Assembly (NCBI GenBank): GCA_013265495.1
Contig: MU057719.1
Coordinates: 930,001-994,000 of the forward strand
Length of the DNA stretch: 64,000 bases
Reading direction: 5' to 3'
From: Vicugna vicugna
Taxonomy: Eukaryota
Shown here in pieces: positions 680-37,401 of the stretch; the stretch's first letter is position 1; every line of letters starts with the position of its first letter. The notes beneath the pieces were generated by a model, which was not told the origin of the DNA, searched no databases, and saw only the letters and a program-made list of their open reading frames with translations. The position numbers were made by a program, and so were the translations under genes.

Positions 680-3600
680 CTGTGCCCAATCTCATGGGCA
701 ATGGTGACCCCCAGGTCGAAGCCAGTATCCTCAGTGATCAGGCAGTTCCAGGAAGAGGAGCAGGCGCCCCCCAGCTGGGTGACCCCCCGAACCTGTCGGT
801 TACCATCAGGCAATTCCAGGTCAAACCTCAGGAAGAGAGAACAGACAGCTGGGTGGTGCTGAAGTGCCAGCCCGCTGCCGGGCCACCTTTGCAGAGCGTG
901 GGAGCAGTGCCCAGGCAGGCTGGCACGCCATCAGGGAGCTTGGCTACCTGGTGATGTAGAGGACCAGGTCAGCATGACTGGGATCCGTGTCATCCTCGGG
1001 GTTGATGGTCCTGCTCCACTCACAGACGCTCAGCAGTGATGCGGTGATGTTGGCTGTGATATTCGGAGCATCCTGGGGAGCCAATAATAGACTGCAGGTT
1101 TAGGGGACCCGCACCAGGCAGGCTACTGCCCAGTGTTGGCATCTCAGTCAGTCCTCATAACAACCCTGTTACTGTCCCATGTTGCAGATGAGGAGACTGA
1201 GGCTCAGCAGAGCTGGAATTCCGGTCCAGGTCTGGCTGGTGGGCAGCCCTGCTGTCACCCCTGCTGTTCTATGGGCATCCGCGGGCAGAGGTTAAAGAGG
1301 GCAGAAACAGGTTTTCCAGTGAGCATCCAGCTCAGTGCCTACCTCCGGCTGCGTCAGTATGACCATCTTCACCAGGTGCACTTGGAACTGAGCCCCCAGG
1401 GATGGGTCCCTCAGCAGCTCTGACCCCTGTGGAAGGGCAGGCAGGACAGGTGACACATGTGGGTGGGCCACCACCAGCCTCAGCCGACCTGCATCTTAAC
1501 CCAGGCTCCCAGCTCCCTACCTATGAGCTCAGGGTACTGCTAACTGACCTCAGGATCCCAGGTGTCTCATCAGTAAGATGGAGAGAAAGACTTCCACGGG
1601 TGTCGGGAGACAGGGACAATGCAGCTGGCGCCAGGCGGGCATCCAGTCACGACACTGGCCACTACCAAGACCGGCACCATCTGGGCAGGAGCCAGCCTGC
1701 AACCTACCACCTGGCCGTCCTCAGTCCCCAGAAGACGTCAAATGACCGAGGGAGCATGGTTTGATTACTGAATTTCAGCATGTTAGAGGTGGGGGTAACC
1801 CCCAGAGCTTGAAAATAATAGCTTTCAAATGACTTAGAGGGAAAGGACCTACTGTACAGCATGGGGAACTACACTCAATTCCTTGTAATAACATACAATG
1901 TAAAAGAATCTGAAAAAATAGAGGGGGGGAGCGTACAGCTCAGTGGTAGAGCATGTGCTTAGCAGGCACGAGGTCCTGGGTTCAATTCCCAGCACCTCCA
2001 TTAAGTAAGTAAATAAGTAAATCTAATCATCTCTCCCCTCCAAAATAAAAATAATAATAAATTTTTAAAACTTTTTTTAAGAATCTGAAAAAATATATAC
2101 GTGTATGTATAAATGAATCACTTTGTCGTACACCTGAAACTAACATTGTAAATCAACTATACTTTGATAAAAAACAAAATTAAAGAAAAGAAATTTAAAA
2201 AAAAAGATCCACACCCTCTGTGCCAGGCCCAGCCTGGGTGTCTGGAGTCTGTGAATAAAACTGCACCAAATGTGGGGAAAACAGAAGTCTCAGCGGGGAC
2301 ATTTTCCATTTGCAGGGTTTGCAGGTAGAAACCGAAGCGGGTTCACCCTGGACTTGAGGCAGCTTGTCCAAAAGTCGGGACCACCTAGGGGTGGCAGCCC
2401 CACTGGCTGCCAGGGCTGTACCTGCTAAGATGCCCATGGATCGAAGGGACACTGGGGGAGAGGCCAGGCTTGAGTGTCCCCGGGTGAAGGGGTTGTGGGG
2501 TGTGCTCCCTGGGGGGCAGGGGAGGTGAGAACATGCTGCACTCCTCCCTGCTCCAGGGCCCTGAGCCCCAAACATGACCCCGGCCTCAGGGTTATACCGA
2601 GTTCAGCCCACTCAATAAGCTGGCCCACTGATGTTTCGCGCAGCGCCAGGCATGCGACACTGTGTCCGCTCCCTGGGTCAACACCGCCCACGAGCCTGCT
2701 CCCCACGCGGGCACCCACCATGTTGAGGTTGGTGAGGACGTAGCGCTCCGTGTCCTCCCCGTGAACCGCGTGGACGTCGGGGCCCACGGCCACCAGCAGC
2801 TCCAGGTACAGGACACTCCGAGCAGCCCGTCTCCAGAGGCGAGGGGCCGGAGGGCAGCCTGGCGAGGAAGGAGGCAGGGCCGAGAGCGAGGGTCCTAGCA
2901 AGCAGGTGGAACATGGCCAAGGCCACCCGGTCAGCTGCCCTCCCGACCCCACAGCCCCCACCACCAGGCCTCTCCTGGCCACACGCAGGGCTGGCCCACC
3001 TCACCGAGCCCTGGGCTCAGACACACAGCGTTGGGAGCCCCGTGTGGGCCGCTTCCCGTAGGGAGGAGGGAGTCGTGGGCCCGCCCCTCCGCCTCCTCTG
3101 GGACAGCGCCTGCCTCCCGGCACCCGGAGACAGGCAGCAGCTCCGCCCGCCCCCCGGAGCTGGTGTCTCGGCGCCCACGGACTTGCCCCCTCAGCCACCC
3201 ACGAGCTGAGCTAGGACATCCTGGCCTCCCGACCCCTCAGGAGTAAATTCTAACAGGGGATGAGGGCCCCAGGCTCTCGCATATCACTGGTGTTGTGACT
3301 GTCAGAGCTGACGGCCGGCTGGCTCATGGGAGAGAGGCGGCTGGGTGTTGGGAGGACGGCCTTCTAGGTGAAGACACTTCATTTCACTGCATGGGCCGAG
3401 ATCCCACTGCTGACTGGGCATTTCAGGGCAGTGCAAGGCCCAGGGGGGAGCTGGCGTGTGCCCTCATGTCCTTCTGGTCACCCCAGAGCCCCACCTGGGC
3501 ACACACTGGAGAACAGGGTCACCCCAAGATGGCAAGAAAAGCCCAGGACACCCCCCTGCAGGCACCTGGACGCAGCTAGGGAAGTGCATGCGCGGGCCTG

Positions 3601-6600
3601 GGGGGCGGCAGAGCTGTGCCCTGGAGGCGTCGTGTGGGCCTGCAGCGGCCACTTCCCGTCTCTGGGCCTCAGGGCTCCCATCTGCAGCACTGGGACTGTC
3701 AGTAACGCTGACCTAGGCCCCGAGGCTCCAGGGCGCACATCTGTGAAGTGCTCTGTAAACTGTGACAGGCTGTTCAGAGGTGGGAGGTCTACCTGTCCAC
3801 CACAAAGACGGTCTGGGGCACGGCTGGTGGCCCCGCGAGCCGGCACTCCCCTGCATGCTAAAGAAGGTGGCTTGTGGAGTTGGGGGGCGTTTTGCGCAGC
3901 CCCCAGGCATCAGGAGAGCTGGTGCCCCTGGGCCCCTTGAGGCTGTCCCTGCCAGCAGCTCCGCCTTCCCTCTCCCAGGAGCTGTACCTGGAACCACAAG
4001 GGCCGGGTGCACCGTGGGGTTGGACCTGTGGATCAGGTGGGGCTGAGCACCGCCCCAGGGTGGCACCAGCTCCCGGTGCTGCCTCTTCAATGGCTGGATG
4101 TAGAGCCTGTCTCCACCCACCACGATGTCACCCTCCTGGAGAGGAGAGAGCAGCCTGGTGCACACAGCCCCCTCCCCGCCCGCTACAGGGGAGCCTCTCT
4201 GGGCCATCCCAGCACCGGGCATGGACTGGCCCTGAGCCCTCTCCAAGTCCAGGGTCGAGGAGCCCATCTGTGGGGGACGACGTGGGACCCAAGCCCTCTT
4301 GGGCGGTGCTCACGGCCTGTCCCCTGCTGCCAGCCCCCACTGCCACATTCCCACTTCCCGGCATGCACACGGCCTCCAGGCCGCCGTCTGCAGGGCCTGG
4401 TGAAGACCCCGGCAGGCCCCACAGGTGCAGGAAAGGAGGGGTCTTGAGGGACTGGCTAGGCCTGTGCCAAAGAACAGCAGATGGACCCTGAATGGCATCT
4501 GTCTTGACCCAGGGCTCAGGGTACGGGGGTGTGTAATGACATAAATGGCTCTGGCTCACTGAGTGACCCCCCGTGACAATGTGTGACACCAGTCCTCACA
4601 GCTACCCACGAGGCAGGTGCTGTCTTCCCCATCTCTTGGTGCCGACGCTGAGGTCCGGTGGAGTGATGGGCCAAGGTCCTTGTCCCCAGCTCAGCCACCT
4701 GCTAGCTAGGGGCCTGGGAAGACTCAGCTGGCTTTTCTGGGCCTCCCTGGAACAGGCCCCCGAGGGGTCTGACGGCAGGCTAAGAGCTACGTGGTGCTGC
4801 TCTCTCATGCGGCTGTGCAGTGGGGGCTGGGGGGGCATGTATGCACCACGGGGTCCCACCAGCCACGTCCTCTCCCCGATGCCGGCCGGGGCGCCCACTC
4901 ACCACACGGCCCGAGCAGTAGGTGAGCCTGGCTGCTGCGCCCAAGGGCAGCAAGGTGCGGCCTCCCGTGAAGCAGGGGTGGGGGGGCCCCCTGAGCAGCC
5001 GGAGGGAGGCGTTCACCACACGCTCGCTGGTGAAGGAGGCAGCGAGGAGGCCCATCCGGGGCCGGAAGGAGAAGGAGAAGAGCTGTCCCAGGGCTGGCAG
5101 GGAGCAGCGTGGGGGCCTGCAGGGTGCTCCTCCCTGCCTGTCCCCATCCTCTTCTTCACAGACACAGGTGAGCGGGGCCACGTCGAACTGGGGCACTGCG
5201 GGAGACAGGAAACCCCTCACTCACCGGTCAGCCGTCCGGGCCCTCGTGCTCTGGGGAGGGGCCCAGAGTTCTTCCCTTTGGAGAGAATCAGTGGGGAGGC
5301 GCGCTGGCCTGGAGCCCTGGAGCCCTGGAGCCCAGGAGCCCAGGAGCCCAGGTTCACATCCCGCTTCTCCAGCTCAGGCAAGGGGCAGCTCGATGCTGCG
5401 GGGCCAGGCCAGCCTTGGAACACATGTCTCATGAGTGAAGCCCTGAGGCCCGGCAGGGGAAGCGGAGCAAGCATGGCCTCAGTGGAAAACAGGAGCCCAG
5501 GACCAGCCCCACCGTCCTGGTCCACCGTCTCCTCACCCCAGTGCAGCCCCCAGCGGCCATGGGGGCCCTAGGCTGTGGTCTCCTGACCCTCCAGGGAGCT
5601 GCAGTATGAGACACTCAAGCTCCTGGCCCCCACACCACAGTTAACTGCCTCCCACCCCGGCCCTCCGGCACGGCCCCGGGCACTGGCCGGGCTGTACCCG
5701 ACCCAGGCCACAGAGAAGTCAGTCACAACTGGACATCGCTATTTTGCCCCACCCTGACCACTAGCCCACTCTGCCCCTGGTGCCCACCAGCTTTTGGATC
5801 AAAGTCACCAACAGCCCTACTTGGAAAGGGGGCCAGCACCCCGAGAAGTCCACGGACACAGCCCACGAGCAACGAGTGCAGAAAGGCTGTGTGTGGCTGG
5901 AGCTTGACCCAGCGCGCGTGTTGCCGTCACAGAAGGGATAAATGTTTACATCCACGGCCAGCGACCGCAAGAGCTGCTGACAATCAGTCAGCCCAGGGGG
6001 CCCAGGCGTGGAAGGGCCGGCTAATTAGCGGCCATCTCCAGACGCCGAGCAGAACCCTGGGGTCAGAACCCGCGCTCGGCCCAGAACACGCAGACCCGTT
6101 TTTATCGACTTGGCAGGAAGTAGTGGAGTTAATTAACAGGGGTGACCGCAGGGGCTCTGACCGCCTCCCAGCCCAGCCACCACAAAGCCGAGACCCCTGA
6201 CTCAACGGCACCCCCGCAGGCCCCGAGAAACTCCCCAGGCTACGAAGACTCCAGGACTAGTACCTTCGGAGGTAGCGGCAGGGCCAAAGTAAGCCATCAC
6301 CTCCTCTGGCTCCAAAGCCTGAAGAAATCGCTGTGGAACAGAGAGGATGAATGAGGGGAGGGAGGTGGGAGGGGGCTAGGCACGGGGCAGGCATAGAGGG
6401 GAGAGGCAGAGAGAAGGGGCCGCAGGATGGAGAGGCGGATGAGAGCCACTCACCCTGGCATGGACAGCGTGTGCCCTTCACCAGCCAGACAGACGGTACC
6501 GAGAGGCCAACTTCTTCTCCAGGGAGCACACTTCGTCCCCTGAACCTCAAGTTCCGATTCCTCCCACTCTGCCCCCTCTCTCTAGGGGATCTGCCCTCGG

Positions 6601-6775
6601 CACCCAGTAGAGCTGTGACTAATTCCCAGTGCTCAGGCTCCCCCGGCACCACCGCTCCTCCAGGACCACCCACCTGCTGGAAATCGGAGAGGCCCCAGCA
6701 GCCCAGGAGGAAGAGCACAGAAGTGAGAATTCCCCGCGCGCATCTCCCCAGGAGGCGAAGCTCACGCGCCCTCAT
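680..6775 (-). CDS. ADAMTS13: ADAMTS13, von Willebrand factor-cleaving metalloprotease, 5' part (signal peptide, propeptide, metalloprotease domain up to HEIGH); continues beyond the left edge
   Basis: Human-equivalent exons, all GT-AG and phase-consistent: 6674-6775 (MRARELR...[10 protein letters not shown]), 6264-6330 ([11 protein letters not shown]...), 2719-2858 (...[20 protein letters not shown]...TNLNM), 1343-1426 ([14 protein letters not shown]...), 948-1072 ([10 protein letters not shown]...DLVLYITR), 680-826 ([14 protein letters not shown]...TIAHEIGH, start of the HExxH zinc motif). Two further exons at 4903-5195 and 3988-4135 are listed separately. Confidence 0.97.
1150..1240 (+). 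mobile_element. MIR fragment
   Basis: Core tgtcccatgttgcagatgaggagactgaggctcag. Confidence 0.6.
1845..2205 (+). mobile_element. L1 3'-end fragment (laurasiatherian/cetartiodactyl type), split by the SINE
   Basis: ggacctactgtacagcatggggaact...gaatcactttgtcgtacacctgaaactaacattgtaaatcaactatact followed by an A-rich tail; recognised from memory as an L1 3' UTR. Confidence 0.75.
1921..2078 (+). mobile_element. tRNA-Ala-derived camelid-type SINE (vic-1-like), inserted into an L1 3' fragment
   Basis: tRNA-Ala-like head (agctcagtggtagagc...cttagca...gggttcaattcccagcacctcca) and AT-rich tail. 17-bp target-site duplication aagaatctgaaaaaata at 1904-1920 and 2079-2095. Confidence 0.9.
3988..4135 (-). 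CDS. ADAMTS13: ADAMTS13 additional prodomain exon X2 (148 nt, phase 0 to 1)
   Basis: Acceptor ctgctctctcctctccag|GAG and donor CCAG|gtacag. Encodes [49 protein letters not shown], matching the ADAMTS prodomain G...YxIxPL...PHxxxR block. X1 plus X2 is 441 nt, which keeps the frame between exons 2 and 3. Confidence 0.82.
4903..5195 (-). CDS. ADAMTS13: ADAMTS13 additional prodomain exon X1 (293 nt, phase 1 to 0)
   Basis: Acceptor gtttcctgtctcccgcag|TG and donor CGTGTG|gtgagt. Open frame [13 protein letters not shown]...[29 protein letters not shown]...HPCFTGG...[12 protein letters not shown] matches the ADAMTS prodomain pattern (AFxxxFxLxLxPxxxxLAPGF...CFYSG...AALSLCxG). Confidence 0.85.
5308..5352 (+). 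repeat. 8-bp tandem repeat (ggagccc[t/a]) x5
   Basis: cct-ggagccct-ggagccct-ggagccca-ggagccca-ggagccca-gg. Confidence 0.9.
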
Positions 6776-7705
6776 CCTCGGGAAAGCCTGCCAGCCCTCC
6801 TGCCGGCCCAGGGAGGGAGAGCTGTGGTGACTGAAGTCCAGGCGGTGTGGAATGTGACAGACCCCGCTGGGCTGGAGGATTAGCCTGTGTTTACTCTTAG
6901 GAGCTTCTTCCCAGGGCTGGGGCCGGGGGTGGGGGTGGGGCGCTGGCCTGCCCGCCGGCTCCGCCCTTGCTGGCTGGGCCAGGCCTGACCGGCCCTGCAC
7001 CTGGGACCGTGGCTGGGGGGATGGATTCAGTCCTGCGTCCCCCGTGGCTCCCCTTGTCTGAGGCACCTGCATACCTGCTCTCTGCAGACAGCCCTGCCTA
7101 CCATGACCTGTCCCCACTCTCCTGTCCTCGTTCCCTTCCTCAGCTACTGCCTGGTCTGTGCCTGCTGCCGACGGCCACCCACAGAGCCAGGCTGGTGGCC
7201 CCAGGCTACACTCAACATGCAGTCCACTCCACTTTCTGGAAGGTTCTCTGGCACACTCTCTGGACTCTCTGAAGCACTACCGACACTCCCTCCCATCTCC
7301 AGGACGCCTCCTCCAACTTAGCTGATGGCTGACAGAGGGTCACCCCTGGTCTCCTGCCTGCCCCACCACCCCCATCCTCTGCTACCAGGAAGGACAACCC
7401 ACCCATCCAGCTGCGCTGGTCTACTTTCCTGTCAGGCCTGTCTGTGGTTTGAGTCCCAGCCCTGCCTGCATGTCCCCTTTATCCTGCCCCGATTAATGTT
7501 GCGCATTCCTAACTCTGTCTCTGTGGCTGCTTCCCAGAGACCCAAACTGGCACACTGCCTGCATCCTGGTGGCCTCGTCGCTGGCCTGGGCATCTGGACT
7601 GGGCCCCTAACTCCCTGCTCGCTCTCTCACTCCCCCTTCCCATCCCATCTGAGAACTCCCCAGCCTCAAAACAATCGATAGCTCCCCCTTTCTCCTTAGA
7701 ATAAA

Positions 7706-17299: not shown

Positions 17300-37401
<20,102 letters not shown>

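Follow-up and report, generated by a model that had tools for sequence, protein, structure and literature searches.

Does the camelid gene for ADAMTS13, the von Willebrand factor protease and the enzyme that is deficient in thrombotic thrombocytopenic purpura, encode a longer propeptide than its human and mouse counterparts, and what kind of domain would such a propeptide form? The human and mouse propeptides are short (approximately 41 residues; Majerus et al. 2003, cited through PMC8275829 and PMC6706451) and are reported to be unnecessary for folding, secretion or latency of the enzyme. Reviews and a crystal-structure paper likewise describe the ADAMTS13 propeptide as very short and as having neither a chaperone nor a latency function (PMC8275829, PMC10499240, PMC6706451), and Petri et al. 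2019 suggested that an intrinsically latent catalytic domain compensates for the non-inhibitory propeptide (PMC6706451). The stretch of DNA analysed here, hereafter referred to as the window, comprises 64,000 nucleotides of Vicugna vicugna (assembly GCA_013265495.1, contig MU057719.1, positions 930,001 to 994,000) and carries ADAMTS13 on its minus strand, at the low-coordinate end. A sequence-only reading of the window had proposed that intron 2 of this gene, between the equivalents of human exons 2 and 3, holds two additional exons (here X1 and X2) that together rebuild a full-length ADAMTS prodomain.

The gene structure underlying this proposal was fully reproduced from the sequence (Table 1). 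X1 and X2 are devoid of stops, are bordered by AG and GT and extend the reading frame by 147 codons, all as originally described, and the peptide that had been quoted for them is identical to our translation. X1 is preceded by tgtctcccgcag (acceptor) and followed by gtgagtggg (donor), and the corresponding borders of X2 are tctcctctccag and gtacag. When exons 1, 2, X1, X2 and 3 are joined they form a single open frame of 250 aa; since the 441 nt of X1 plus X2 are a multiple of three, leaving both exons out also preserves the frame. X1 encodes six conserved Cys residues, located in the motifs CxC, PC, RC, PCFTGG and TYCSG, as well as the N-A-S sequon pointed out in the sequence-only reading, which we place at 5013..5005. 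The sequence RLWRR (2827-2841) ends at residue 214, with cleavage predicted directly after it (RLWRR/AA), in agreement with the 214 aa calculated earlier for signal peptide plus propeptide. The upstream acceptor of exon 3 listed in Table 1 is the one chosen by the Vicugna pacos RefSeq models, and similar inserts are present in models from sea lion, baiji, pangolin and Pteropus medius; judged from these inserts, it is probably an alternative 3' splice site that has been conserved in the tail of the propeptide. Elsewhere, the window contains a run of 319 N (33412-33730), an assembly gap or masked stretch.

Table 1. Features of the 5' part of ADAMTS13 in the window (slashes mark splice borders; coordinates are those of the window).
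Feature	Position	Strand	Description
ADAMTS13 exon 1, coding part	6674..6775	minus	Met1 to Gln34, signal peptide; donor CAG/gtgggt
ADAMTS13 exon 2	6264..6330	minus	67 nt, ends in phase 1
Exon X1	4903..5195	minus	293 nt, phase 1 to 0, residues 57-154
Exon X2	3988..4135	minus	148 nt, phase 0 to 1, residues 155-203; includes ...PHLIHR
Alternative exon 3 acceptor	2859..2894	minus	tgcttgctag/GACCC, 36 nt upstream, +12 residues in frame
ADAMTS13 exon 3	2719..2858	minus	propeptide end, RLWRR, start of catalytic domain
ADAMTS13 exons 4-6	near 1430, 1085, 820	minus	encode ADAMTS13 catalytic sequence

Intron 2 has a GC content of 66% and contains 1566 AG..GT pairs, 100-400 nt apart, that enclose an open frame, and its antisense strand holds an open stretch of 334 codons. 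The combination of an open frame with AG and GT borders at X1 and X2 represents no excess over chance in this GC-rich intron. Base composition at the third codon position (GC3 of 0.80-0.82 in X1/X2, against 0.43-0.61 at codon position 2) is coding-like but constitutes weak evidence. As open frames with splice sites are so common by chance, homology, together with constraint, must decide whether the two segments are exons.

A phmmer search with X1 against 1.84 billion representatives returned 17 matches. Several of these were read-through open frames on unspliced mammalian contigs (63-78% identity), and three were spliced ADAMTS13 models (P0014, a caecilian protein of 905 aa, P0015 and P0018) in which sequences resembling exon 2, X1, X2 and exon 3 follow one another directly and in that order. 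The matches listed in a region search that used P0014 as query included long-prodomain ADAMTS13 proteins from sharks, rays, frogs, turtles, squamates, birds and platypus and, among placentals, from tree shrew, seals, cats, flying fox, mole-rat and baiji. When the query was restricted to the residues of the cat protein that correspond to X1 and X2, the same type of search also recovered bear, dog, ferret, donkey, rhinoceros, more bats and sloth, as well as Camelus dromedarius (P0147 to P0149) and Camelus ferus; the listed matches include more than 20 placental species with a long prodomain. Exon order and junctions in the window match those of the annotated long-form orthologues, with ADAMTS13 catalytic sequence downstream (exons 4-6). 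Sequence comparison thus identifies X1 and X2 as orthologues of ADAMTS13 exons that are annotated in vertebrates ranging from sharks to mammals, with every junction corresponding. The long ADAMTS13 proteins of Xenopus laevis (P0075), Caretta caretta (P0024) and a shark (P0091) share with that of the window the exon order, the six Cys residues, the N-x-S sequon, the motifs CF.GG, YC.G.L.G and IQP and the pre-catalytic dibasic site, whereas the identity between non-mammalian and camelid long prodomains is only 17-46% and camelids carry a four-codon insertion after CxC. Outside the window's species, the long form is also encoded as a frog-like protein of 1574 aa (P0088) on a Logan contig of 4838 nt, a contig size that shows its expression. 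Short ADAMTS13 isoforms are annotated in some carnivores (mink) and in pangolins, related species of which have long ones, and skipping of X1+X2 may therefore occur. The initial suggestion that this lineage keeps the ancestral long prodomain holds as far as ancestry is concerned, with orthologues from sharks to platypus and placentals; it does not hold as a trait special to camelids, since a long prodomain is also present in carnivores, equids, rhinoceros, bats, sloth, tree shrew, mole-rat, manatee and platypus.

The question of whether these exons are already annotated in camelids, which the sequence-only reading had put without answering, can be answered in the affirmative: X1 and X2 are included in public RefSeq gene models of Vicugna pacos and Camelus, and in models of many other vertebrates. 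The conceptual product of the window is 97.2% identical, over 250 aa and with no gaps, to the Camelus dromedarius protein P0147, whose cluster comprises RefSeq isoforms from Vicugna pacos and from two Camelus assemblies. All listed camelid RefSeq isoforms with an N-terminus contain the exon 2-X1 and X1-X2 junctions, and a direct junction of exon 2 to exon 3 occurs in none of the 15 listed camelid isoforms. The RefSeq/Gnomon models of Vicugna pacos (XP_072816573-75) have both junctions in common with the window and show one substitution in 250 aa; the first 60 residues of two Vicugna pacos RefSeq proteins (P0160 and P0167), as printed, are those of the window. These models differ from the structure in Table 1 in that their exon 3 acceptor lies 36 nt upstream and adds 12 residues, whereas the models of Camelus dromedarius (XP_064346791, XP_064346798) and Camelus (XP_074218662 and following) also share the X2-exon 3 junction, at the 2858 acceptor. 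In the motif PC(R/G)PP the window has Arg, while Gly is found in all camelid models. Some Camelus isoforms (P0155, P0161, P0164) carry a predicted N-terminal extension that corresponds to the window open reading frame at 7432-7593 (minus strand, MPRPATRPPGCRQCASLGLWEAATETELGMRNINRGRIKGTCR...); this extension, which would place the signal peptide internally, is a prediction and we regard it as doubtful. Support for the inclusion of X1 and X2 in the mature mRNA of the window's species comes from these RefSeq models, which may themselves rest in part on homology.

RNA-labelled sequencing runs were compared with the window through shared 31-letter words. In fourteen such runs, the share of sampled words that was present amounted to 0.33-0.35 for the interval 2700-6400 and to 0.38-0.43 for 3988-5195; for the same two intervals, spliced-only coverage would be expected to give shares of about 0.11 and 0.26, and the complete unspliced dromedary locus shares 0.364 and 0.413 of the window's words. 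As the shares in the runs match those of the unspliced dromedary locus, the runs carry intron-containing Camelus-like sequence and are neutral with respect to splicing. An interpretation of the highest values (0.35 and 0.43) as exon-only coverage was rejected, because the whole unspliced dromedary locus gives the same.

Comparison with dromedary DNA (L006) revealed differences at 3 of the 293 nt of X1 and at none of the 148 nt of X2, that is, at 3/441 nt (0.7%) for both exons, against 114/2918 nt (3.9%) for intron 2 (binomial P = 2.6e-5), a divergence approximately five times below that of the flanking intron. The constitutive exons 1-3, which are short, are no more conserved relative to dromedary than the intron is, in keeping with a propeptide tail that evolves rapidly. 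Eight loci (the window, dromedary, donkey L007, manatee L008 and the Logan contigs L001-L004 from other mammals) retain an intact X1 together with its conserved acceptor and a gtgagtgg donor, and the six loci that extend as far as X2 all have this exon intact. Under a codon model (GY+F3X4), omega was estimated at 0.25 for X1+X2 (6 taxa) and at 0.19 for X1 (8 taxa), and omega = 1 was rejected in both cases (2dlnL = 89 and 124, respectively); the analysis was carried out without the DNA of the cat, sloth and Hipposideros isoforms. Pairwise NG86 estimates were only moderately low between orders (0.38-0.54) and amounted to 0.18 within camelids. Taken as evidence from codon substitution, these values indicate that X1 and X2 are under purifying selection.

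The sequence-only reading had named an omega near 1, or frameshifts in related species, as results that would speak against it. The omega estimates across mammals are well removed from neutrality. As for frameshifts, the frame and splice sites of X1 are preserved in the eight mammalian loci and one frameshift was encountered, late in X1 on the bat-like Logan contig L005 (~2128-2160). On a related bat-like Logan contig, L002, Arg replaces the second Cys of CxC (~2755-2765). Both changes could represent lineage-specific decay or assembly errors.

Alignment of intron 2 and its surroundings by blastn to manatee and to L001 recovered islands only, namely exon 1, exon 2, X1, X2 and exon 3; the exon 2 island takes in ~400-570 nt of the following intron, and L001 has one further intronic stretch. 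The noncoding sequence just 3' of exon 2 (~5750-6263), which aligns to manatee as far as ~5927 and to L001 as far as ~5752, contains the AT-rich motifs ttaattaa, gctaattag and tgtaaacattta inside the GC-rich intron 2 and, given this alignment, may be a conserved intronic regulatory element. In the manatee Trichechus inunguis (L008, 2657-2935 and 3701-3847), X1 and X2 are intact and have canonical splice sites within intron 2, yet the only manatee model found (P0128) is short. Short models can therefore be annotation choices, and annotation probably misses the long prodomain in some mammals, as the intact manatee exons suggest.

The nature of the encoded domain was addressed with an alignment, A1, of 41 long ADAMTS13 prodomains ranging from shark to camel. 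It displays two invariant and four nearly invariant Cys residues, a nearly invariant N-x-S sequon and the motifs CF.GG, TYC.G.L.G, IQP and PH..F/HR. The match to the Pfam family PF01562 (Pep_M12B_propep) that had been expected at the outset did not materialize: none of the 41 prodomains matched this HMM even at E <= 10, nor at the same threshold did X1 alone, X2 alone or nine long-ADAMTS13 N-terminal regions, and the precomputed Pfam lists of long ADAMTS13 orthologues do not include PF01562. A search of the ESM Atlas with X1 produced only weak bacterial look-alikes with low recognition, and searching PDB sequences with the A1 profile gave only chance matches, with E values of at least 0.33.

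Structural comparison, also mentioned in the sequence-only reading, produced a match to M12B prodomains. The AlphaFold2 model built on A1 is confident (pLDDT 78, pTM 0.71) and has N-terminal helices derived from exon 2 and a beta-rich body derived from X1 and X2. In a Foldseek search of the Swiss-Prot AFDB, the best 30 of 30 matches were prodomains of ADAMTS1, 15, 8, 4 and 10, of ADAMs and of snake-venom metalloproteinases, with a probability of 1.00, E values of 2e-6 to 3e-4 and TM scores by query of 0.40-0.46, which lie below 0.5 and relate predicted structures on both sides. The best matches in the PDB were the ADAM17 prodomain or zymogen (VIA-align Z of 7.0-8.1, versus 5.5 for the next unrelated fold). 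The region also occupies the position of a prodomain, at residues ~30-214 between signal peptide and catalytic domain, with PF01421 directly downstream in the orthologues. From the modelled fold we conclude that the X1/X2 region is a divergent M12B-type (adamalysin/ADAMTS) prodomain; orthology, constraint and modelled fold support the proposal that the two exons restore a full-length ADAMTS-type prodomain. Compared with known M12B prodomains (PF01562; ADAM17, PDB 8snm, 8snl, 9o58), the long ADAMTS13 prodomain is alike in position, in its beta-rich modelled fold and in its C-terminal convertase site, but it shares only 13-25% identity with other members, fails to match PF01562 and lacks a conserved cysteine-switch residue.

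Nearly all of the 41 orthologues carry a sequence of the type R-x-(K/R)-R or K/R-R ahead of the catalytic domain. ADAMs, snake-venom metalloproteinases and some ADAMTS proteins possess a zinc-coordinating cysteine-switch residue in their prodomains. Among the 41 sequences of A1, the segment running from the IQP motif to the convertase site contains no conserved Cys; the six conserved prodomain Cys residues, an even number, are consistent with three predicted disulfides. The window and the Vicugna models contain a further Cys at position 205 (window 2854-2856), nine residues before RLWRR, where Camelus has His; this residue is unpaired and close to the usual cysteine-switch position, and it is not conserved.

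How X1 and X2 should be understood depends on weighing these observations against several readings. The abundance of open AG..GT segments and long antisense frames in intron 2 would be in keeping with X1 and X2 being chance open frames in a GC-rich intron, a notion that is refuted by homology, with phmmer E values down to 8e-39 for mammalian copies and 2e-14 for the caecilian protein, as well as by all of the constraint data (omega, dromedary divergence and splice sites), and to which we attach practically no credence. The two segments could alternatively be decaying relics that are no longer spliced and that enter gene models by copying of homologous proteins. While the failure of Pfam to match the X1/X2 peptide is compatible with decay, of eight independent mammalian copies of X1, counted in addition to those of the window and of dromedary, seven are without stop or frameshift, and the exception, L005, has a single frameshift that is possibly an assembly error. 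Conserved splice signals, omega values of 0.19-0.25 with neutrality rejected and the reduced divergence from dromedary further argue against decay, and we hold this already disfavoured reading to be very improbable.

It is also conceivable that X1 and X2 form a cassette pair, giving rise to long and short mRNAs, in which case the circulating enzyme would be mainly of the short form and the long form minor or tissue-specific. Such an arrangement would be compatible with the preservation of the frame when both exons are skipped and with the short isoforms annotated in mink and pangolin beside long ones in their relatives, but it is at odds with the lack of any direct exon 2 to exon 3 junction among the listed camelid isoforms, with the intact exons and splice sites in the manatee, for which only a short model was found, and with purifying selection on X1/X2, from which it follows that the long form matters. 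Overall we consider a cassette unlikely. By far the greater part of our confidence rests with X1 and X2 being genuine, maintained ADAMTS13 exons that encode part of an ancestral M12B-type prodomain, the short form of human and mouse being derived; we regard this explanation, taken as a whole, as highly probable.

If X1 and X2 are indeed maintained exons, then exon 2, X1, X2 and the start of exon 3 would encode an M12B-type prodomain of ~180 residues, a long prodomain would be the ancestral vertebrate state, and the short propeptide of human and mouse, the length of which is taken from the literature, would have arisen through derived loss or skipping of X1+X2 (-441 nt, with the frame kept). 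The primary camelid product would consist of a signal peptide encoded by exon 1, the prodomain (residues ~30-214) and the catalytic domain. The prodomain would be expected to form a beta-rich module that carries three disulfides and a single N-glycan, and may assist folding of the catalytic domain and secretion, as in other ADAMTS proteases; a furin-type convertase would presumably remove it at RLWRR/AA before or at secretion. Because no cysteine-switch residue is conserved, we expect that the main role of the prodomain would be that of a chaperone, more than that of a latency clamp of the classical kind. The enzyme of this lineage may, as the sequence-only reading suggested, be chaperoned or kept latent in a different way.

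The human and mouse proteins correspond to the camelid one in exons 1, 2 and 3 and in the convertase site but lack the 147 residues of X1+X2. We found no papers on long ADAMTS13 propeptides in mammals in the searchable literature, and the short human propeptide as a derived state seems to have been little noticed in searchable papers. The sequence-only reading is borne out in its observation and essentially right in its interpretation; the long prodomain is ancestral, widespread and already in RefSeq for the genus, with a function that we infer. On these data, the description of the propeptide as uniquely short and dispensable appears to apply to human and mouse only, the ancestral and still common form being a full prodomain under purifying selection. 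The gain lies in the correction of a textbook generalisation rather than in new biology, as the exons are already in public models and the trait is not specific to camelids. We lean, if only slightly, towards the broader view that the short, non-inhibitory propeptide regarded as a hallmark of ADAMTS13 is a derived peculiarity of primates and murid rodents, and that most vertebrates, including dog, cat, horse, camel and probably manatee, keep a complete M12B-type prodomain that is maintained by selection and that Pfam does not recognise. If this is true, the idea that intrinsic latency of the catalytic domain compensates for the propeptide (Petri et al. 2019; PMC6706451) would need to be revisited, and dog or pig models might differ from human in the biosynthesis of ADAMTS13. 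The finding bears on genome annotation, where two intact exons are missing from the short manatee model, on the design of recombinant ADAMTS13 from veterinary or model species, and on the evolution of ADAMTS13 latency.
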